Below are positions 22,501 through 37,702 of a stretch of DNA of 64,000 nucleotides, piece by piece. The notes below the pieces were generated by a model. That model saw only the letters and a list, made by a program, of their open reading frames with translations, was not told the DNA's origin and made no database searches. The DNA is taken from positions 12,162,698-12,226,697 of the forward strand of contig OZ037765.1 in NCBI GenBank assembly GCA_964035545.1. Direction: 5' to 3'. Source of the stretch: Bugula neritina. Taxonomy: Eukaryota > Animalia > Bryozoa. Position numbers and translations under genes: made by a program. The number at the start of each line of letters is the position of its first letter. The stretch's first letter is position 1.

Positions 22501-25500
22501 TACGCTGTATAACAGCTTCAACATGGCAGATCAGAAAACCAGTAGTTTACACTGAAAGCTACAGAATAACTACAGTTCCATGCCAACACTATTTTTGTAG
22601 CATCTCAAGATGCTTCAACTTGCCTTTTGTCAAGTAAAGTGACTAACTTGAATTAAATAGAACTCACAAAGTATGATGACTGTTGTGATAGCAAGCGCGG
22701 GGTTTGTTGAGATAGGTCATAGCCTGAGATACTTCAGATGGAGAGGAAGTCAGGTCTTGCAGAGTGGAGGAGACGTGAGACAAAATGTAGTAAAGTGTAG
22801 AGTTGATGACGTCCGAGTTGAGAGAGTCTGGTGCTTTACTGTCGCTGATGGCAAACCCTGACTGCCACAACTACACACCACAACATGTCTTTACAGTTAA
22901 AATAGGCATCAACTAATCTTGGAACAGGTTAACGAATAAAATTACAGGTCAGACTTGTAAAAAATAATTGGGCATATTATTAATTTCGTAATGAGTAAAT
23001 CTAAGTTGTCATGCATTGCAAATCTGTGCGACTTTGTAAATGGCCTGTTAACTTGCTGCATTTACTATTTAAGCGATGCATGCTGTCATAAACATTACAG
23101 GATTTCTAACAAATGATGATATTATTTACACTGGCTGTGTACAGTGGTCTATGCATGTTATTAAAATCCAAGAATATGAGTAAAATAAGCCGTCCGAAAA
23201 ATTCCACAGTGACAACATTAAACACTTTTTAGAAAATTAAAATTGTTGTTGTAAACTCACGCAAGTTTATAGCGACTATCTCTGTGAGAACTCCTGGCGG
23301 AAAGGATTTTTAAAAGAGTCTAAAGACTTATTTCTATGTGGCACGGGAGCAATTATGACTGAATGCACTTCCTAACATCACTACTAGTGTTCGAACTCGA
23401 ACCACCAATTTTATGTTACCTAGGCCAGCACCCAAGCCACAGCCGCTTAAAAACTGTCCAAACTATAACCTGTAGACAAACCTTATGCCATGCAAGTGTG
23501 TGCTGCTCATAGAGGTCACTGCTGCCGGTGTGTAAAGCACTCTTCACTGCCTTCACACAACGTGACTTCCTGTCTTGAATAGTTTTCTGAGTGACACTCT
23601 TATCGCCTTTGTTTTCCATCACTGTGTAGTCAAACACCGTGAGAGAGTGCCTCAAGACAGTTCTAGATGTGACACCAATTACAACATTACATACCAACAC
23701 CGAAAACAGTATTATATACATTTTATTCTGTGTTTATTATGAATTATAGCAACAAACCTACTAGCTTAATACAGTATCACTAGATAAACATACACAAACT
23801 ACTATATAAATAATTTTGAAGTACTAGCTAGAGTTAAATTCAAGAAAGTTTAATTTTACATAATTGTGATTCATATCCTTCAATAAACCCCCCCCCCCAC
23901 TCCAGGCATCTCTCAAGTTTCTAAAAATTATCACACTTACTTCTTGGCAGGCAGCTCCATAATGCCGGTTCTAGAAAATTCTCGACCAGCTACGGTTAGT
24001 AAAACTTGCTTAGATAATGTTTTGCTGCCAATGTGCCATTTGGTTCCTGAATCGGCATCAGCTTCAGAGTTGTCTTTCCTAAATAATAAATGGTAGAGTG
24101 TCTAGAGGAGAGAGAAATCTACTCCAAAACAGTAAGAGGTAGTGATAAAACTAGTCTAGCAGAAAAGAGGATAAATTTTCCCATACAAAACCAAAAACAC
24201 ACTAAAAATTTTACTTTTATAGAAACAGTCTGTTATGATCATTTACCGGCAAGAAGTCCTGAAAAGTATTACACGCATACCCAAGAGTTTCTTTACGCTT
24301 GGTTGTTGTAACTGCTAACACATAGCAGTAGTTATAAGAATAAGTGGTAAATAATGAGTATCCAATGACATTCAAAAAGAGAATAGGAGCAACAGACTAC
24401 ATACACATGCTCTATTGGGCTGTGCTCCGTGGCCCACGAGGACAGGATGTCTTGAGTCACAGACACTTCAATATTCTTGTCTGTAGGATTGTAAAAACTG
24501 ACTTCTTGGACCAGCAGGCCGGGCCTGGTCCGGTGAACGTATAGAGTCTCCTTTAGTGTTATACAGTTGGCCAATGACTGGAGCAAATTCAGAAATATAA
24601 GTAGTTCATTTATATAAACTAGAAAGAGAGCCAATTTTAGAGATAAAAAACTGGTGAGAAGAATTATAAAACAGTGTAGTAAAATAAAGGAATAAAACAA
24701 AAGCATAGAAAACAACAAAAGCAATGAACACATGGGGCAGTTGCAGCAGTGCTTTGGACTGCTAATGTGCTGAAAAGATGAATAGCAAAACTTGAAGAAA
24801 CTAATGACAATAAACTGTACACTCTATCAAAAAGCAAATGTACAGAGGTCGTATGTTAGCAGATAAGAAGGGGCAAAGGAATATTGTTAATTGAGAAGAA
24901 TTGAAGAATGCACACATAGATAGAGACACAGCATTGAGTAAAACCCAACTGCAGTGGCACGAAAATGACAATTGCACCAGAAAAAGATTTAATTTTATGG
25001 TGATAAGGATTTTAAAAAGTGCATAATAACTACTCGACATCCACCATGAAAATTAAAAAGAATTAGGTGCAGTAACAGAGAAAATTCAGTAGCTCAAGTT
25101 TTTAATTTTATTAATGAAATTTGTTTGAGCATAAATTCTTTTGTAACATTATTTCTCTAGAACACAGGCTTTTCCCAATTTTTCCACTACTATCTCTAAG
25201 AAGTGATGTATAAAGAAGTGCTTTCAGACAAGTCTGAGCTATTAGAATACGATGTAATGCACACAGCCAATTTATGGTGATACCTACAGCTCCATGTTGC
25301 TGATAGCAAGTATGCTTCACTATTTTTCCATCCACGATGTCAAGGGCAAATGCTTCTGCAACAATTAATATACACATATTCAAATTTTAATAAAAATTTC
25401 AAATTTTTAAATGTTACGCAATTTTGTCACTAATAACCGGTTTGATAAAAAAAAACTAACATTGGTGTATATACAGTAATAGTAAATTATTACAGCAAAA

Positions 25501-27206
25501 TAACTTACATGTTACTAGTGAAAACTATTATGTGTGATAACTAACAAATAGGAAACAAGAAGTAGTGATGACAGACAAATACAACAAAGAGTCAGCAAGT
25601 AAACTGAGCATACAAACAGGTGTTATCATTGCTCTAGTAAACTGAAATATGGTCATAAAATCTTGACTCTATAATCACTAATTAACATTATATTTAGAAA
25701 AAAAAATTAGTTCCAATGCCGAACAATAGTAAAAGGACAGTTACCTTTGACATCATAGCCAGAGATCTCAAAACTAACAAGAGGATTATAGTCTGTAGCT
25801 ATATCTAAGCCACGCTCTCCCTTTAACCATACACCGTGTTTTCCATCTAATGAAATGCCTATATAGCCATTTCCTACAAGGTAATGAGAACTTAAAACAG
25901 GTGATTGTAAAGTTAACTTAACGAACACTCTTAGTTTCTGGACCATCATGGGTCACACAGCTATCTCTTTCTAATCTTGTTCTACAAAATCTCTCTTGAA
26001 GTGTTAAACAACAATAAACAACCAGTCAAATCATTTAAAAGTCTGTGAGTCACCAATACAATATATGAAAAGCGAAAGAACTACATTGCATTCAAGTATT
26101 CTAGCATAAACCAAATATAAAAGTACAAGGAATCAAGTAAAATAAAGAAGAACTTTCACAGTTATTGCAATATAAAACTTTTTAAAATATTATAAGTTTC
26201 ATAAAATCAAGAAATACTAACCTATGTATGGCAAAAAATATTTTTCCACGGGTTTTGCTTTATCTGATGTTGGAACATGATAAACAAATGAATTCTGTGA
26301 GTTAACTTTAGTATTATATATCTTTAGTCGATCTTGAAGGCATCTCTCTATTCGAGCTAAAAGCACAAGTAACAACTGTTTTTTAAATGTAATGAATATG
26401 GCTTCAGATATGAAGAAATGACACATGTTTAATTATATACACTTTAAAAATGTATCTATAAGTACATACAGCATATCTAACATAAACAGCTATATGAATA
26501 TGTTATGAAAAGTGGTTTCATACATGAAGTAACAATGTGTATGATAATGTTTAATATATACTATACAATCATATCTTCATGTACACACAGCACATCAAAT
26601 ATATTAGCTCAATTACTTTATTGACTACCTGTAGTCACATAGTTAACCTAAACCATTTGATAAATGCAAGTATCTAATCAAGATATTCTTTAACATGAAA
26701 TCAAAACCACCTGTAGTGTATGGTTTCAAATCAACGTTAGTTTCATTCTATTTTTTCTATATTAGTGTTGAAAACTTTCCACGCTATTTGCTGGAAATTT
26801 ATTAAAATAAAATACAGGCATGACTCAACACAGAATCTCCATACTTACTTAATACCATGTACCGATGACTCCCCGACTTCAACAGAGGTATGATTAAATA
26901 AATTATTATAACCACGCCCAACACCCCCAGGACCAGCTTTCTTCCGCTAGGCCTGCAACAAATGCGAAATTCTAAAGAGGTATGATCTATTTCTCTTACA
27001 GTGATGTGCAACAACTTCTACATCAGTTGAGACAATAAATTTGAATTCAAATGACAGTGGCTCACAAAATGATTAAATCCTAGCTCGATGAAAGTATTTT
27101 AAAAAAATAAAGAATTAAGGGCTAATAAAGCTGAGGCCACAAGCAGCGGAATTTCGTGTGCGAAATGTATGCAGTGAAAATCCGCTGCTGAAGTTACTCA
27201 CCACAT
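19568..27206 (-). CDS. KIAA2013: KIAA2013-like (DUF2152) conserved membrane protein
   Basis: Exons (-): 27206-27202 (ATG TG), 26952-26849, 26356-26222, 25873-25745, 25355-25288, 24577-24405, 24078-23941, 23662-23482, 22870-22668, 22146-22034, 21706-21436, 21013-20886, 19758-19568. Features: N-terminal TM, FLPYIGNGY, YVHRTRPGLLVQE, LWQSGFAIS, INSTLYYILS, GAEGVLQAVLLSLGGL, FPVKLTKPLTAILY, and C-terminal TM GLPAIFWVILALLIVTFHFFLFKMIFSELC. Confidence 0.9.
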
Positions 27207-28019
27207 GCAATACGTTGACAGCAGGGCGAAATTTAAGCAACTAACTGTATTTGCCAATGGCTTTACTTTCCTATTAAAAATTATTTTATTTTGAAATTTT
27301 ACTTGCTGTTCTCAATAATGTGGAATCGATTGAAACAAAACTAAAATATAAAACACAATAACTGGGCTCACTAAATGGTGATCAGCCAAATAGATTGTTA
27401 CCGCATAAACTTTTCACAGTATTCATTTATCATTTTGACTACATGAAAGCCTCACAAAATAGCCCTATTTTGCTGCCTTTGCAAAGTTTTCGAAAATGGT
27501 CCACTCAGAAAGCCTCTCTGTATGGCCCTAGCTTTATAGTAAAATTATACTTATGCAAATTAGGGTTCAGATTAACAGCTCCTCAAATAACTGAGATAAG
27601 ACATTGTGTATATCTGAAACTCACCTTGCTAATGAAAAAGAACTAAGCTTTTGAAGTAATATGTTTTTCATTTGACCTTGTGGGATATTCATTCTGTGAA
27701 AACGATTCAGGAACTGAGCATTATATAACTTAAATGTCATCAAGCAGTTGATGGGAAGTTATTGAACAATGGCCAACTGCAGAGAAGAGCTGAAATAAAG
27801 TTTCGATGTGTGAAATTGAAATTTAAATAACTTTAGATATTTTATTCAAATGAGCTGAATTCTACAAGACAATACTGTTGATAGTTGACTAAAACTTGCT
27901 GCTATGCTTATTTATTCTTTTCAACACTAGTCTCTAACACTAATCTGTTTTCATTGTCAGCTAACCTATGACTGAGTTTCAATAAAATGATGCATTGCAT
28001 TTAGATTTACCAATTATTT

Positions 28020-28760
28020 CATTATCATCGTCATCATGTTTATGACATATTGATACCGATAGTGATACGTTGACAGTGACACTCGGATATTCATGTTATC
28101 AGTATGAGCATGAGTATCACTCTCACCATCGCAATGAAAATGACGGCCATCTTTATCATGACCATATGTGATCATGATATGATGGTTGATTTACTTTTGC
28201 TTTTAGTGATTATGATTACCATTATCACTAAGTTTATCGTTATGATTATTGTTATGATATCTTTATGATAACATATAACTATTAGTATTATTACTATTAT
28301 CACTAGCAAAGTACTAGTATCACTATCAGTATCAGTATGAGTATGAGTATCTCTGTTTGAAGTTAAATACTAAAATAGTCTAGTAGTAGTATGAGTATCA
28401 CTATCAATATTTATTAGTATCAATCACACTATCACTATAATTATCAGTATCACTATCAGTATCACTATCAGTATCTACTAGTACTATAGTATAAGTATAA
28501 CTAGAGTCTATAACTTATAAGTATCAGTATGACACTGACAGTATCTACTTCTAGTATCAGTATGAGTATCAGTATCTTTGCTTAAATATTCTATTATCTG
28601 GAAAACATTAGCTTAGTACCAATTTTGCTGATTTTATTCAACTATGGTTGCAATCAATTAAATGTTATTGCTATTAAATACTAAATTTAGTAATTACAGT
28701 CATGACTCATAGTGATAGAATGATAGTGATAGCGTCAGCACCATTATCATTATGATGATA
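28020..28760. repeat. Degenerate hexamer-periodic tract (agtatc/agtatg/actatc)
   Basis: Example: cactatcagtatcagtatgagtatgagtatc (28321-28351). Upstream of the KIAA2013 start codon. Confidence 0.7.
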
Positions 28761-29696
28761 ACAGTTGTAATTTAACAGCGGACACACCAAGAGAAATTAG
28801 GTTACTTGACTTGCTAGTTTTAAAGAACGACTGCTCAGCGTGTACTAACCGAAATAATATTGTTTTATAAAGTTAAACGGCTTTTTAATGGGAAACAAAA
28901 ATATATGCAAGATATGATACAAAGAAAGGACAACTCATAAAAAATATCTACGTATTCGCGTATTCTACGTTTCACAATTTTCACTATATCATTTTGCAAG
29001 TGGTTTCAATGGCTGCTTTAAAAATACCGCAAAAAAGTAAACTGTAGTCTGTAATGCTTTACTTTTATTTGCAGAAAAACTGAAACAGTTACGAAACAAT
29101 TTAGTCAGCAAATACATGAATACGTATTACATTCACTGACAAAAATCTTCACAACTCTATCTGTAAGTTACAAATACATACCATTGTATACAAATTAATA
29201 TAGGTACTGTATTATATCAAAGCTAGGTAATTATTAATTATAAGATATGCTAATATTTAAATGTTTAAAATAATAGCTGCTGCAAACACAATAATACTTA
29301 CTGTGTGAAACGTTATAGTCTTGTCAGAATTTGTGTAAAGAATTTTAATAATGTATATTAAAATATACCACATATTCACGCGATTGAAATATTTTCATGT
29401 AGAGCTTTAGAACAAGTATAATATAGAAATTATTTTAAATGTGGCTTGAGCAAAAAAATAGCTGTTTGACTCTAATTTGCAAGAACTCATTGTAAAACGA
29501 TTATATAGTTGAATAATATGTTTATTTTAGTTGGGATATTATAAACTAAAACTTTATGCAAGTTAGCTAAAATGAATTGGTAAATCATGCACTGTAGTAT
29601 ACTAATATTTTAGTAATAAATACACATATTATATTAATATTATACATTATATATTGCATGTATTGCATTGTCTTGAATGCAGTTACGAATGTAGTA

Positions 29697-30934
29697 ATGT
29701 CAACTGTGTTGGGCACAACGTCACTACTTTGCTTGTCAACTTCGTTGTTACTTGTGAATTTTGCGAATCCTATCTTCTCTATTATATCTGTCATAATGTG
29801 TATACTAGAAGAAGAGTTCTTTGATTGTGTTGAAAAGATTGTGGAAGAGTATTTTGATGCTCTGGAACAGTTTGGTAAGATTCTCAATAAGCATATTACA
29901 TAATTATGACAGCAATAAGCTGATATGTTATTATGCTGTAATAATTAAAACATTGGAATACTAATTCAAACTAGCTTATTTTAGACTTATTATTTTTCCC
30001 AAACAGTTTTCAAGTAAATTGACTTTATTAAACTCACCCCATACCTCTCACCTAAACATAACTCATACCTTGTGTTTACAGATGGTGAAAAACCCACTTT
30101 GCCTCAGCCAGAGCTAAATGATGACCAGCCAGATGAGGCAGAGATTAGAAAGCCAATTGATATTGATCAGAATGAAGTGACAGATGAGGACCAAACTCAA
30201 CCACTCCTTCCAACTGTCACCATCAGGCCAGGAGTGGTAGGTTATCTACTCTGTACAATGTATTATGATATCAAATTATACTATTAAAATTCATTGCTCA
30301 AACCACAAATTGGATTTAAAGCAGTGTGTCAGCATCCTAAATTAAAGCAAGCAATTTGAAATTTTATATAGGTGCAAATTATTGTGTTGTATAATGTTTC
30401 TTGCTATAATTACCAATGAAATCATTATCCTTTGCAGAAACCTAAATCTGGGCCTCCATCTGAAGTAGCAAGCTTTGAGCATGAGTTTGAGGAGGTATGT
30501 TAACCATAAAGTTCTATACAGTGCTAATTATTAATAATAGAAACTGATCTATGACAGGATGAGTGAGCATAAAATCTAGTGTAAACAGCTAGCTGAATGT
30601 ACTTATAAGAAAATATGATATTTTTAGGGCTGTTATGGCGGACATTGCCGATTCTGTTTGATGGCGAGAGGAGAGTATGACGAAAGGAGATACCTGAGTA
30701 AGTGCACCTATTTTTAAGAGACTAATTTTCATGAAAAACCCAATTCCTTTCAATTTCTAATTGCTGTGAATGAACCATAAATGTTGTGTCTTGAATAATA
30801 TAGGCTAATCTAAAATTTATAATTTTGTAGATTACAGGGGTCGGAGGTCACTTGGAAAAAGAATCAAGGGCTTTTTTAAAAAAAATTTTTGTTGCTGTTT
30901 TTATCCTTATGGCGAGGACGTCATTGTGCTTTAA
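29697..30934 (+). CDS. Small orphan protein with two FFAT-like motifs, an acidic linker and a polybasic/CCC C-terminus
   Basis: Exons ...-29874, 30082-30236, 30438-30494, 30628-30697, 30831-30934, all GT-AG in phase, with AATAAA at about 30968. Protein: ...EEEFFDCVEKIVEEYFDALEQFDGEKPTLPQPELNDDQPDEAEIRKPIDIDQNEVTDEDQTQPLLPTVTIRPGVKPKSGPPSEVASFEHEFEEGCYGGHCRFCLMARGEYDERRYLNYRGRRSLGKRIKGFFKKNFCCCFYPYGEDVIVL*. The start is uncertain: ATG 29697 gives a hydrophobic leader, while ATG about 29572 plus a microexon gives MNCYECK. Confidence 0.7.
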
Positions 30935-31669
30935 ATTATATTATTTATTATGTTATATTTGAAATACAATAAACTATTATATTCCATTATTCAAATCTAT
31001 TTGTAAAATACTATTAGTGTTTTTTGGTTTAAACTAAATTTATAAATGCAGCTAAACCAGTTATAAGTCCACAACTCTTTGTCATGCATGTGAGCACAAG
31101 TTAAATTGGTATGACAACTACCAACAAGTAGTCACAATTGTCCTACATTCTAATTTTTATAATATTGTGTTATAAAAGTACATAAATAACCAAAAGCATT
31201 CAATACTCATAGAACCCAAAATCTATAAAAGCTGCAACTTGTAGCCCAGGGGCACTGTAGCCCAATTACAGGGCAGGTGGTAAGCAGGAAACACTATGTT
31301 AGAAAGAAGGCAAGGTTTATGAAATTTATTTTACTCTTTTAGCTTCACCATATGAGACTAGTATATTTATTATTTCATAAATGTTAAGATCGATTTGCAC
31401 TGGAACATTTCATTTATGGAGACAGCTGTTTACAGTTTTTAGAAAGCCGGCAGTAAGCTCTACACACTCTACAAGGCCACCATTTTATTACAACTAGTAT
31501 AACTGAGCTGAGAAATTGTATATTTATGTGAAAACAAGAGCATTTAATGGCAAGACTCACACTGTGTAGTTTAGCAGTTTCCATAACAGATATTCTCTAT
31601 TTCCCTCAGATATTTCAAAACTCTTTGAGCTAAAGACTTCAACATCTAAAGGCGTAATAGCAGTTGCAA

Positions 31670-31933
<264 letters not shown>

Positions 31934-31989
31934 TTGAGAGTTTGAGTCAGCTAGTGATACTGCCATTTTTAACAATCTACCCATAATAT

Positions 31990-33090
31990 TCTGGAGATGA
32001 TGCTTTTATAAAGACAATTGTTACCCGTCTCTAGATGTCTGCCTGGTAACTTTTTACATGCAGCATAAGTTTATTTTTTGTGGGAAAAGCTGAGAATTTT
32101 GTTGCGCCATCTTTGTTGGAGAACAGAATACAGAGCATATCAGCCATCATCTACGCTTATTTACAAACTTTTCTATTAATAAGTAGTTGCAGTTGAGACT
32201 TGAAGTACTTTCCAAGCTGTTCAAAGCTTCCAGCACAGTCCGAGTCTTATTGTTTCAAGAAGGAGTAGGATGTGCACTTTGCTTTTCCATAAAATTGTGC
32301 AAATCAAATCACAACCTGATAGAGCATGAAAGCCAGAAAGTGCTGCACACAACTCATGTCCAAGTTTATTTGCAGCAAAATTGAGATCTAAATATCTCAT
32401 ATGATCATCATGTTCTGTGAATGTATAAAAGTTTTCAAATAGTATAGTATATTGCAAGTATTGAGACTCAAGATAAAGAGTCAGTGTCTTGAAACTTTAG
32501 TATTATACACTTACACACTATATTTTTTATATAAGATCACGCATGTATGCATGTGTCTCATCATGATCTGTATATAAGCGCTTGATTTCAGGTTTTCTTA
32601 TGAACTCTGCCATGTTTTGACAATATTAGCTAAATGCAGTTTCCTTCAAATGCAACAACTATGACAATATCCACTGTCTAGCCTCTTTCACCCTATTTTT
32701 CATGCAAAAAGTGCACCAGAAGTTTTTTGCTAGCTGCCAGGAAATTGCAAAATAATTGACTGGAAATCTTTGATTTGAACAAATGTTCCATGACCACCTA
32801 TTATATAGCATGACTTGATCTCTCCATGTTCTTAAAACAGGTTTTTTAGATTTAAGTCACACAAAAAATCTATCTAGCATGAAGGATAGGAATGGGCTCT
32901 TACAATAAGTTTTGTAAGGATTGTATATCAGCATGCAAACCAATTGCAAGAACAGTTTTCAGTTCGTGGAGCTCTGCCATTCCATCAAAGATGATAGTTG
33001 AGTTAATAGATGAATGTTTGAAGCATTGCAGTCTGTGGTATATTCTCTTCCAATAGCATTCATGAGAACACATATAGGTTCATCAGATTT
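31990..33090 (-). mobile_element. Decayed Academ(X)-like DNA transposon fragment (XPG/FEN-like nuclease region)
   Basis: Minus-strand remnants in the expected order: TIIFDGMAELH (about 32970-33000), TDHDE..H (about 32550-32572), QDTD (about 32480) and ELCAALSGFHALSGCD (32310-32357). Interrupted by stops and frameshifts. Confidence 0.65.
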
Positions 33091-35266
33091 TTATATATAA
33101 TATTAGATTGAGTTAAACATTGTAAGTAGGTGTTATGCGCCTACCAGAACCAGACTCCAAAAGAGTCTAAGAGTGCAGATCGAATTGAATAAAATTAGAA
33201 GTGGGCAGTCACGATTTTGTGATTTATTTTTATCATAAGTTAACTAATTATAGCCACAATTTATGCATTTAGTTGGAAATTTTCATTGGACCCGTAATTT
33301 TATTGCTATAATCATTTAAGCTCCCTTCATACTTTCTGGTGTGATAGCAAAAACGTAGCCTAAAATTGGATAAGAAATATTTTTAGAACAGCAAAACATG
33401 CCTAGGTAACCCTTATAAGCCTATAAATGTGCTAGTGTTTCTGGTTTACTCACCAATCAGTCTAGAACAGTTTGTCCTAGTTTTCTAGCAGGAAATTATG
33501 TTCTTTTGTGACTAATGGCACACATAAAAAGTAGTTTCCCATGATCCTTGTAAAAGGCACCACCAGATTTTTTTCTAATGGGTGACTTAAGCATAATTAT
33601 ATTATATAATATTTTAAATTATAGCAAAGCTTTAGGGTATTCCCTAAAAATAACTGAGCTAAATAAATTTTGTTTCTGAAATCATTATTAAAATAAAAAG
33701 TATGCATTTTAACGAACAGCATTGCTCATAAAATTATATATAGTTCAATTTAAGTTTTACAAAGTTGAAACATCCTCCGAAGTTCAGAAAAATTGCTCAT
33801 GCTTCTCATTTCCTTTTATTGTACCTAATAGTAGTGACAATATTTAAAATCATTAGCTTTAATAATTTCAAGATATCTGACGGCATAGATAAATTTAGGG
33901 GAAAGCAACTCCCTCGACAGTTTGAAGAGCTTTTGTGGTTAAATTGGAGGACAAAACAGCCTAGAGCTTTACAAAAATAGAGTTAAAAATGCCTTTATGA
34001 TCATCTGTATAAATTCTTATGTATATATAAAAATACTAGCCTTAATAAGTCCAAATTATTTAACTGATTTAAACAAAAATTAGGAGAAGACAACCAATGA
34101 TTTATTTTGAAAGTTTGAGAGGCTTTGTGGCTAACTATGTGCGCAGAACACTTTAGAGTTTTCACAGAATACTTAAGAACCTTAAAACTCTTAATTTCAA
34201 AAATAAAATTTCGTGGCTCACCCTCGGAGTGTACTGAGTGAAAGATAATTGGAGGTTGCTTCTAGACTAACAAGGGAATTTAACTTTTTTGTGTCTCTTG
34301 TAGTCGTTAGTGAACCAATCAAACAGCTACAAAGATGTTTTTAAAGTATTTTACTGAAAATGCACTAAGGCTGAAATATGCTCAAATGCTGAAAAGGAGC
34401 TGGTAAAATTGTTTGTGAGCTAGGGACTAAAATAACCCTAATTTACACGCTTTTGTTCTTCAAAGCAATCTAAGTTGCATTATTTTGAAAAGTTTTAGAA
34501 TATTTTGGTAAAGAGACATTGAATTTTCAGTAGCAATGTGTAAAACAAGTCATAAAAACGCCCATTACATGCAAAGGCCATGAAACAGACTCAGATACCA
34601 TAACTGGCATAACACAGGCTAAGGCGGTGGCTTTTAAATAGAGATATATAGAGTTCTTTTTAAATATACCAATGATTGACATGTTCAAATGCAGCAAATA
34701 GAACAGTGATGTTTTAGCAGTTGCATATTAACAATATTAAAACAGCTGAATGCATGGTTACTGCCTTGTAATAGTGTATTGCATTGCCAACAAGAAGTAA
34801 CATTTTAAGTAGATAAATGCTGAAACAATGAAAAAGTATAATATATCATGTTATTTGAAATTGATCAACTTGACTTTTTGAGAGATTTTTAAGATTTTTG
34901 GCTAAAAGAAGTCATTTTTAAGCAAAACTATGCTCCAACAATCTTGATAAGTTTCTTTATGTGCTTTTGTACAGAAATAACAACTATTTAATAGAAGTGG
35001 CAATTGGAAAATTCAAAGGCCATAAAAAGGGATGCCATAAAAAGGGCTAAAAATGGTGTTTAATCAAAAAAAATTTAGTGGAAGTGCATTGAAATAGTTT
35101 GAAACATTCACAAAGCAATGGAATGTCAGAAAATTTTATACAGTTATTGTAACTTAAACACAACAATTGTATTCCCTTATGTTTCTGAAAAAAGCTTCAT
35201 TGTTACAGATTTGAACTTTAAGCCAACAGCAAAAATTTCACAAATTACGTGTGATTGAGCACTAAC

Positions 35267-37010
35267 ATGCTTGCACAACTGAATATAATCGCCTATTTAA
35301 ATGTTGTTAATGTGCTCGTCATATTAAGTGGGATAATTATTGTACTGCCAGTGGCTCTGATATGTTGCTGCTATTTTAAATCGTCTGGAAAGCAAGCTGC
35401 AGCTGAACATTTTCGAACGAACAGTTCCATGCCAGAAAATGAGGGGTGGGTTTAATTAGCGCTAGCAGTTGGTGTAACTGTCCTGTTGTTTGATAGATCT
35501 TATATATCACATAATATTGTATACTGCTGCAGATTCAAGCTTTTACATTAGAATCAGCTAAGCACGTTTCTATTTAAGTATTGACAGTTGAACTGTCCTT
35601 TAAATAAATATCAAGAAAATGTTGCTATGGTTAAACTTAGTTTTTACATTAGATGATAAAAAAACTTATGTTTCTATTAAAGCATATTTAAAATGTGTGT
35701 AAACTCAAGCCAGAGAGTTCAAGTGACCGTCAAAGCCTTACATAGTGCCAGCAGCTTAAGTTTATGGGCACGGTTAGAGAGCTCAATCATTTAATATTAA
35801 TGCTTAGCATATATATTTCTACAGTAATTTTTCTCCAGAAAGATATTTTTACGTGCTTCCATGTAAACATAACAATGCATTTTAGTTCTGCCAATGAAGA
35901 TAATCAAGCCTCTGGTAACAGAGAATATTATGCTATGATAAAGAGACCACTTAATTATGTACCCAAGTAAGTACTGGGCAAACAGAGATTTCACTAAAAT
36001 ACTTTAAAATTAAAATTATATCTGTAAAACGAAACCAAAATATTTTTCCAAGCACCAGCACCTACAAAACCAATGCAAACCATAGATTAGCTGTTTTATA
36101 ATATAAACAAATTTAAAAATATGGACTTTTCTCTGGTAGCTCCTCAGTTCTTCAATAATATCTATTCCTTAATGTGAGAATAAAACACTTTGTCAAATAT
36201 TTACATTAGCATTCAAAATGATAACTTGTTGACTGCATTATGTGGTCAGCTATGAATGAGTGTTATGATTGTTTCAGTGGTATTATAATATATTACAGTT
36301 TAGCCCCAGCTATTTGTCCTTTATATCACCTATTTTTTGCTATATGTCGGTATATATAAATAAAATTTGCTGGCATAGCTGTTGCATGAAAGCTTAGTAG
36401 TGCTAATACGAGTTTATTATACTTGCAGCCCCAAGAATGTAAACCGGCAACCAACAAGTCAAGACTATTATGATAGGATGGTAGGTTTTCCCTAAACTCT
36501 TTTCTTTCTTATATAATTTATTGACTTGTAAAGTTGTCAATTAAATATTGTAATAAATTTTGCTTCTTATTTGTAGCGACAAAACCCCAACAGAAGATCT
36601 GAACCAAAACCGGTACCTTTACCAAAACAGTTTTCGGGGTCCTCCCTACCATCTTTTGGATGTACACCTCCACGTATTCAATCATATGTACAACCATACA
36701 TTCCAGCACCACAACCTATACTTGTTCAAGTAATTTATACATAACTGTATATTAGTACTTTAAATAATGTCTATCATGCATTAATCTGAGGCTGCTAACC
36801 TTAGTATCCTAGGATTAGGTTCTCATATCCGGAAGTTTAAAGTTTTAAAGTTTAAACTTTTTTATTTATTTTGTTAATATACCACACACAAACGACAATA
36901 TAACCTTCCTATATTTGTTTATGTTATATATAAAGAAAGTTGCAGGTGAATAAATTAACTTGTGTGTGAGTGTGAGTGTGAGTGTGAGTGTGAGTGTGAG
37001 TGTGAGTGTG

Positions 37011-37060
<50 letters not shown>

Positions 37061-37702
37061 TGTGTGTGTGTGAGTGTGTGTGTGTGAGTGTGTGTGTGTG
37101 AGTGTGTGTGTGAGTGTGTGTGTGTGAGTGTGTGTGAGTGTGTGTGTGAGTGTGTGTGTGTGTGAGTGTGTGTGTGAGTGTGTGTGTGTGTGTGTGTGTG
37201 AGTGTGTGAGTGTGTGTGTGAGTGTGTGTGTGTGAGTGTGTGTGTGAGTGTGTGTGTGTGAGTGTGTGTGTGAGTGTGTGTGTGAGTGTGTGTGTGTGTG
37301 AGTGTGTGTGTGGGTGTGTGTGTGAGTGTGTGTGTGAGTGTGTGTGTGTGTGAGTGTGTGTGTGTTAGTCATTGGAAGCTCAAAAGTATCACACTATAAG
37401 TTAATTTCAAAATACTATTATGTTACAGATCTTAAATTATTTCATATGTTAAAAAACATAGTACAATGGCTCTATTAACACAAGCTCTATATTTACTGCT
37501 CATTTATTAAATTAACTATTTGTTTATGACAGGGTTCAGTCAAACCTATTGAAACAGCACAGCCTCAAATTGTTCAAATGATAAAGAAAAAAAGAAAGAA
37601 GACATTGATTACTGATGGTCGGTTTAATACATGCTTTGAAAAAAAGAAATTTGGTTTTGTATATGTTGTTCACTGTTCTGTGGCCTATGCAGCAATGTCT
37701 TG

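Follow-up and report, generated by a model that had tools for sequence, protein, structure and literature searches.

The 64,000-nucleotide stretch of Bugula neritina DNA analyzed here (the window; contig OZ037765.1, positions 12,162,698 to 12,226,697) contains an unannotated five-exon gene at 29796-30934 on the plus strand, which on its sequence features is very probably a genuine protein-coding gene of this bryozoan. Its predicted product carries two closely spaced FFAT-like motifs at the extreme N-terminus and a basic tail with three consecutive cysteines at the C-terminus. The best explanation for this combination, which we favor tentatively, is that the 154-aa protein is cytosolic and domain-free, and would dock on the endoplasmic reticulum (ER) protein VAP through its FFAT motifs and on an anionic membrane through its CCC tail. 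A tether of this kind had been proposed in the original prediction for this stretch; the observations behind that proposal were partly confirmed by our analysis, and its interpretation as a tether appears partly supported.

The surrounding window is AT-rich animal DNA in which introns are short, and all four introns of the gene have GT-AG boundaries. That the gene is spliced is supported by conservation of these predicted splice sites, together with the stop codon and the AATAAA signal, in all eight copies that we aligned from two Bugula genomes. The features of the gene and its flanks, in window coordinates, are as follows.

29648-29655, plus strand: TATA-like TATATATT
29650-29925, plus strand: concertedly evolving block of ~250 bp, in which exon 1 is preceded by ~145 bp of putative promoter-proximal and 5'UTR sequence and followed by the initial ~50 nt of intron 1
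29697-29795, plus strand: probable 5'UTR with upstream ATGs (the N-terminal extension of the original prediction), not conserved as coding sequence
29796-29874, plus strand: coding exon 1, MCILEEEFFDCVEKIVEEYFDALEQF plus the first base of a split codon
29814-29834, plus strand: FFAT-like core 1, EFFDCVE, with positions 1-5 and 7 invariant in all seven readable copies
29847-29867, plus strand: FFAT-like core 2, EYFDALE, invariant in all copies
30082-30236, plus strand: exon 2, acidic and Pro-rich linker, weakly constrained and disordered in the structural model
30438-30494, plus strand: exon 3, short linker, with a protein sequence 100% identical to that of the ortholog L017
30628-30697, plus strand: exon 4, encoding G-C-x-x-G-H-C-x-x-C-(L/F)-M, 70 nt in all eight copies
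30831-30934, plus strand: exon 5, tail and stop, RGRRSLGKRIKGFFKKNF-CCC-FYPYGEDVIVL-stop, with the stop codon TAA at 30932-30934
30968-30973, plus strand: AATAAA polyadenylation signal, 27-33 nt past the stop codon in all eight copies

The conserved start is the ATG at 29796 (MCILEEEFFDC...), which has an A at position -3, yields a product of 154 aa and is kept in frame in seven of the eight aligned copies. The AUGUSTUS models P0003 and P0004 of B. neritina also begin at MCIL. The original prediction had placed the start at 29697, giving a hydrophobic 33-residue N-terminus, and had estimated a size of about 150-190 aa; the product from 29796 falls within that range, whereas the 187-aa model from 29697 does not stand. 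The ATG at 29697 is replaced by ATT in paralog L002 and GTT in paralog L004, and indels separate its position from the motifs in L002 (+1), L003 (+2) and the ortholog L017 (+1 nt). Since this ATG is lost or the frame broken in relatives, the hydrophobic N-terminus is not conserved coding sequence. DNA upstream of the start region (codons ATG-TGT-ATA-CTA-GAA-GAA-GAG) is very similar among the copies, but its frame is lost.

The conserved start MCIL gives no signal peptide or hydrophobic leader, and no exon encodes a hydrophobic stretch of transmembrane length. With nothing of either kind ahead of the motifs, the concern that they might face the ER lumen is answered. The upstream neighbor (a DUF2152 gene) lies on the minus strand, so the gene is independent and does not form the 3' part of a larger gene. 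A reading in which exon 1 continues a larger gene through a splice acceptor at TAG before AAGAAGAG was rejected on the strand of this neighbor and on the in-frame ATG at 29796; it is also opposed by the lack of an in-frame ATG in exon 1 downstream of that site. The Met-Cys N-terminus encoded at 29796-29801 is conserved in all paralogs, and we take the Cys that Met removal would expose to be a possible Cys/Arg N-degron or acylation site.

Searching with exons 1 and 5 located four copies of the gene within 350 kb on one chromosome of the window's own genome: the window gene, L002 and L003 on the plus strand, and L004 on the minus strand. Four more were found in the GenBank draft GCA_010799875.2 (PMC7576161), namely L017 (the ortholog of the window gene), L018, L019a and L019b, and the eight aligned copies form three orthologous groups. 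The draft is collinear with the window over 25377-34160, and the introns of the window gene are ~83-92% identical to those of L017. B. neritina is a complex that includes cryptic sibling species (PMC11480708), and these levels of identity fit assignment of the draft to such a sibling. Six of the eight copies are intact; L004 has a 2-nt insertion that brings a stop after MCIL, and L019b has a 1-nt deletion that shifts the frame of exon 5. A further locus, L012 (G000:C1:12465164-12468247, minus strand), is a scrambled pseudogene copy that lacks exon 1 and contains an exon 2 with an in-frame stop, two exon-4-like pieces and two exon-5-like pieces.

With the open frame around exon 1 as query, a word-indexed search of proteins of 56-177 aa returned only three B. 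neritina hypothetical proteins (EB796_013049, EB796_013057 and EB796_003450) and one JGI fragment, and among annotated proteins of this size no relatives beyond Bugula were found. Three of the four matches begin MCILE(E/K)EFFDC, and EB796_013049 has MCTLEEEFFDC internally, after a longer predicted N-terminus. No Pfam domain was detected in the products of exons 1, 2, 4 and 5 or in the Bugula models P0002 and P0004, including none of the lipid-transfer domains (ORD, START or PITP) of the kind carried by OSBP/ORP, CERT, Nir2 and STARD3; the 19-aa product of exon 3 is shorter than the 20-residue minimum of the search. A PDB search gave nothing significant, with designed helical repeats and a C-terminal segment of CPT2 as nearest matches, an ESM Atlas search gave no usable match, and Rfam gave one spurious tmRNA match (18.9 bits against a threshold of 50 bits). 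These searches used single exons or database proteins as queries. They agree with the earlier view that the protein belongs to no known family and lacks a lipid-transfer domain, and so far as can be seen the family seems to be restricted to the B. neritina species complex.

The motif E-F-F-D-A-x-E in an acidic flank is a ligand of VAP and MOSPD2, and proteins that carry it are grouped by function and not by homology. Its consensus positions are numbered E1-F2-F3-D4-A5-x6-E7 (PMC7610837), and FFAT motifs are graded by position-weight scores (PMC7705450, PMC8306308). As originally described, the window gene encodes EEEFFDCVE and EEYFDALE in one frame on the plus strand, with the cores spaced 11 residues apart, and each core departs from the consensus by one conservative change (A5 to C in core 1, F2 to Y in core 2). 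Position 6 of core 1, the free position of the consensus, is V in the window copy and A in L017. L002 contains an in-frame 21-nt duplication of core 2 in exon 1, so that it carries a third EEYFDAL unit. When the whole window was translated in all six frames (128,000 residues), the pattern [DE][FY][FY]D[AC]x[DE] matched only twice, at these cores, and it was found in none of 50 shuffles. In the eight-copy alignment, no part of the protein is better conserved than the key FFAT positions. As for the acidic flank, two of the six residues upstream of core 1 (MCILEE) are acidic, a short flank that results from the location of the motif six residues from the N-terminus; upstream of core 2 the count is two in the window copy (VEKIVE) but three in the paralogs (VEEIVE).

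The genome encodes two canonical VAP genes, L020 (G000:C5:17223369-17223533) and L021 (G000:C4:8475300-8475449), which have near-identical MSP signature exons (FKVKTTAP(K/R)RY(C/A)VRPNSG); the next exon of L020 carries the KHKFM FFAT-binding motif. Further MSP-domain loci were noted on C9, C4 and C1. A complex prediction pairing a VAP MSP domain (P0013:1-125) with the product of window positions 29781-29873 scored 0.22 against a mark of 0.34, which we count neither for nor against binding. We regard the case that the protein binds VAP as evenly balanced. In the mechanism that we propose, the FFAT pair at the N-terminus would engage the MSP domain of VAP in the ER. At the other end, the polybasic and aromatic residues and the invariant CCC (putative S-acylation sites) would hold an additional, anionic membrane (for instance the plasma membrane, the Golgi or an endosome). 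The two ends would be separated by ~70 residues of flexible linker rich in acidic residues and Pro, making the product a minimal VAP adaptor or tether that operates without a lipid-transfer domain. The complete two-ended tether model is possible but somewhat doubtful. The points that we count against it are the helix predicted for exon 1, the short flank of core 1, an excess of non-synonymous change in exon 1 (four, with no synonymous change, relative to L017), weaker constraint in two of the orthologous groups, the two broken copies and the 11-residue spacing of the cores, which may not leave room for two MSP domains at once.

FFAT motifs bind VAP in extended form, and the predicted helical, amphipathic pattern of the motif region is therefore a real caveat for the FFAT reading. 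The helical hydrophobic moment of exon 1 is 0.55, a value reached by none of 2000 shuffles, and a single-sequence AlphaFold2 model of P0004:1-78 (the exon 1-2 product of the ortholog) has a helix at residues 7-27 (pLDDT 64-74) followed by a disordered linker. These results count for a rival explanation in which the likeness to FFAT is incidental, exon 1 forms an acidic amphipathic helix for dimerization or another partner, and the downstream cysteines bind Zn or Fe-S instead of being acylated, perhaps in connection with the ER cytochromes P450 whose genes were duplicated along with the family. We consider this explanation rather unlikely. Two adjacent near-canonical cores would hardly arise by chance, the selective conservation of the key positions also speaks against it, and the functional FFAT motif of CERT likewise precedes helix-prone sequence. 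The designed helical repeats and CPT2 segment among the nearest PDB matches would fit a helical exon 1, though none of these matches was significant. An AKAP-type RII-binding helix was set aside, as exon 1 has an aromatic residue where a small aliphatic one is needed.

The metal-binding part of this alternative draws on exon 4, whose small cysteine cluster had been recognized in the original prediction. In the window copy it reads G-C-Y-G-G-H-C-R-F-C, a CX4CX2C arrangement with a conserved His, and further cysteines (the CCC) lie 33 residues beyond it. Exon 4 aligned over a 17-residue loop to the cluster-binding loop of Fer2 (Pfam PF00111), which has the same CX4CX2C spacing, at an E-value of 0.08; the score of 13.3 bits falls short of the 21-bit cut-off. 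With this score, and with no room for a ferredoxin fold, our analysis does not place the protein among plant-type [2Fe-2S] ferredoxins, and we treat the CX4CX2C spacing as a lead only.

The possible connection with P450s comes from gene order: three of the four copies in the window's genome follow a P450 gene of the same orientation at a distance of ~0.7-1.1 kb or less, L018 and L019a in the sibling genome are placed in the same way, and overall no more than ~1.3 kb separates the P450 stop codon from the start of the FFAT gene. The best-conserved copy, that of the window, lacks a P450 neighbor, a point against a P450-linked role. Fusion to an upstream P450 was likewise rejected for the window copy. 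Model EB796_013057 (P0003; L019:6001-11160) is chimeric, joining exon 1 of one FFAT copy to a P450 heme-loop exon and then to exon 2 of the next copy; its P450 piece, which connects exons of two neighboring copies, looks like an artifact of prediction. The loci L029/L002, L030/L003 and L004 (G000:C1, ~12.43-12.54 Mb), along with L018 and L019, form a tandem cytochrome P450 cluster, in which the duplicated unit is a P450 gene (or at least its 3' end) together with the FFAT gene.

The remainder of the protein was largely as first described. Exon 2 encodes the acidic and proline-rich spacer, and exon 5 encodes the basic, CCC-containing C-terminus ending FYPYGEDVIVL. The exon-5 product comprises a polybasic and aromatic stretch (30836-30883), the CCC (30890-30898) and an acidic and hydrophobic C-terminus that ends in D-V-x-V-L. 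All seven copies with exon 5 in frame retain R-G-R-R-S, K-R-x-K-x-F-F-K, the CCC and the terminal D-V-x-V-L; the window copy has eight K/R residues in exon 5 and a Ser embedded among the basic residues. A polybasic and aromatic stretch beside clustered cysteines is typical of acylated peripheral membrane anchors, and lipid anchors that combine polybasic sequence with a cysteine cluster include those of GAP-43, the MARCKS effector domain and the CCCPCC of phospholipid scramblase. The Bugula tail resembles these in its basic and aromatic stretch beside clustered cysteines and in the Ser within the basic run, but the likeness is compositional, without homology, and acylation of the tail is putative.

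The same tail could serve a protein that binds VAP without tethering membranes. Such a product would be a small, soluble competitor or regulator at the FFAT site of VAP, with the tail acting as, for example, a PKC-regulated electrostatic switch or a PDZ-type ligand; we find this improbable. Strong FFAT cores in a protein with no lipid-transfer or membrane-spanning domain would suit a competitor, as would the Ser among basic residues and the conserved D-V-x-V-L end, and variable copy number with two fast-evolving groups is expected of a modulator. The invariance of the CCC beside a basic and aromatic stretch is nonetheless typical of acylated peripheral anchors, and exon 5 is strongly constrained, with five synonymous changes and one non-synonymous change between the window gene and L017.

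The proposed two-ended protein has partial counterparts among known VAP ligands. IncV of Chlamydia trachomatis, a tandem-FFAT protein without a lipid-transfer domain that tethers membranes to the ER (PMC7610837), shares with the Bugula protein the placement of two FFAT motifs in one short acidic stretch, the lack of a lipid-transfer domain and a proposed role of pure docking to ER VAP. IncV is, however, a bacterial inclusion-membrane protein with transmembrane anchors and is unrelated in sequence, whereas the Bugula protein is an animal's own and has a putative lipid anchor. The motifs of IncV are also further apart than those of Bugula, at ~24 residues. OSBP/ORPs, CERT and Nir2 carry the conventional motif (EFFDAxE; PMC7610837, PMC7705450), which the Bugula cores match apart from one substitution each and with some acidic residues nearby, but the Bugula protein differs from them in lacking PH, ORD, START and PITP domains, in carrying its motifs at the extreme N-terminus and in being restricted to Bugula. 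Kv2.1 and Kv2.2 are plasma-membrane partners of VAP (PMC7705450) and are alike in proposed logic, in that a protein at a non-ER membrane presents FFAT to VAP and so forms a junction. Unlike the Bugula protein, which has 154 aa, conventional motifs and a putative peripheral anchor, the Kv2 proteins are large integral membrane proteins with phospho-FFAT motifs.

Comparison of the copies provided several lines of evidence for protein-coding function. Among the six intact copies, differences in exon length between groups are always divisible by three (exon 1, +21; exon 2, 155/134/122 nt; exon 3, 57/66/51 nt), exon 5 is 104 nt across intact copies and exon 4 is constant in length, so that the frame is kept, and intron lengths vary freely. 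Each intact copy in the two Bugula genomes retains both FFAT cores, the CX4CX2C cluster and the CCC; conservation of the two motifs and the CCC in related genomes was among the checks named in the original prediction. The window gene and L017 differ at a dS of 0.25 and a dN of 0.034 (dN/dS 0.14), a ratio that indicates purifying selection; identity between their introns averages ~88%. Their differences are unevenly distributed, with 11 synonymous changes and one non-synonymous change in exons 3-5 (five and none in exon 4) and six synonymous and nine non-synonymous changes in exon 2. None of the exon-1 replacements falls at positions 1-5 or 7 of either core, and one of them substitutes A for V at position 6 of core 1, which the consensus leaves free. 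Between the old paralog groups, exons 2-5 have a dS of ~0.9-1.6 and a dN of ~0.27-0.35 (dN/dS 0.2-0.3); constraint is weaker in groups B and C (dN/dS 0.5-0.7). The frame-keeping exons, the conserved splice sites, stop codon and AATAAA signal, and the low dN/dS together point to a genuine, taxon-restricted gene family.

That these genes are instead silent or decaying relics, young duplicates carried along with the P450 cluster that are no longer translated or never were, is very improbable: the lesions of L004 and L019b, the scrambled L012 and the omission of exons 3-5 from the public AUGUSTUS models (P0002, P0003 and P0004) would fit decay, but at a dS of ~1 between groups the frames, splice sites and poly(A) signal are still intact in six of eight copies, and the window gene has the low dN/dS and the predominantly synonymous changes in exons 3-5 given above.

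If the protein does bind both VAP and a second membrane, it would represent an ER contact-site tether built from two short linear elements and a linker with no folded domain, close to the synthetic tethers designed by cell biologists. It would also offer a dated example of a new gene gaining an organelle-contact function within one animal lineage. The reach of such a finding would be limited to one species complex, with function read from sequence. A bolder version holds that this is the smallest natural two-ended ER contact-site tether, at 154 aa, that it arose recently in one bryozoan lineage and was amplified with ER P450s, and that it may act conditionally through a Met-Cys N-degron or a metal or redox site formed by CX4CX2C...CCC; we consider this combination a long shot.

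In this family concerted evolution is cleanly restricted to ~250 bp around exon 1, and the remaining gene has diverged to saturation. Within 29650-29925 all four copies of the window's genome are ~90-100% identical, whereas other non-coding parts are mostly 30-70% identical between old paralogs, apart from a few shorter mosaic tracts of higher identity. One such tract was observed between L004 and L002/L003 at 30596-30835. Among paralogs dS is ~0 for exon 1 and ~1 for exons 2-5. Over the block, read depth exceeds that of the surrounding sequence several-fold; the reads (run X1) are from genomic DNA, and their contigs cover introns and exons alike at ~120x. Our data suggest that the block has been homogenized, at least in part, by local gene conversion, perhaps favored by selection on the motifs or the promoter.

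Two kinds of repeat lie near the gene. A very high-copy repeat occupies 28167-28667, where summed contig depth is ~1,000-25,000 compared with ~120 nearby and many rearranged joints occur. Long (CA)n/(TG)n microsatellites at 31646-31984 and 36866-37372 give rise to artifactual His/Thr-rich open reading frames on the minus strand.
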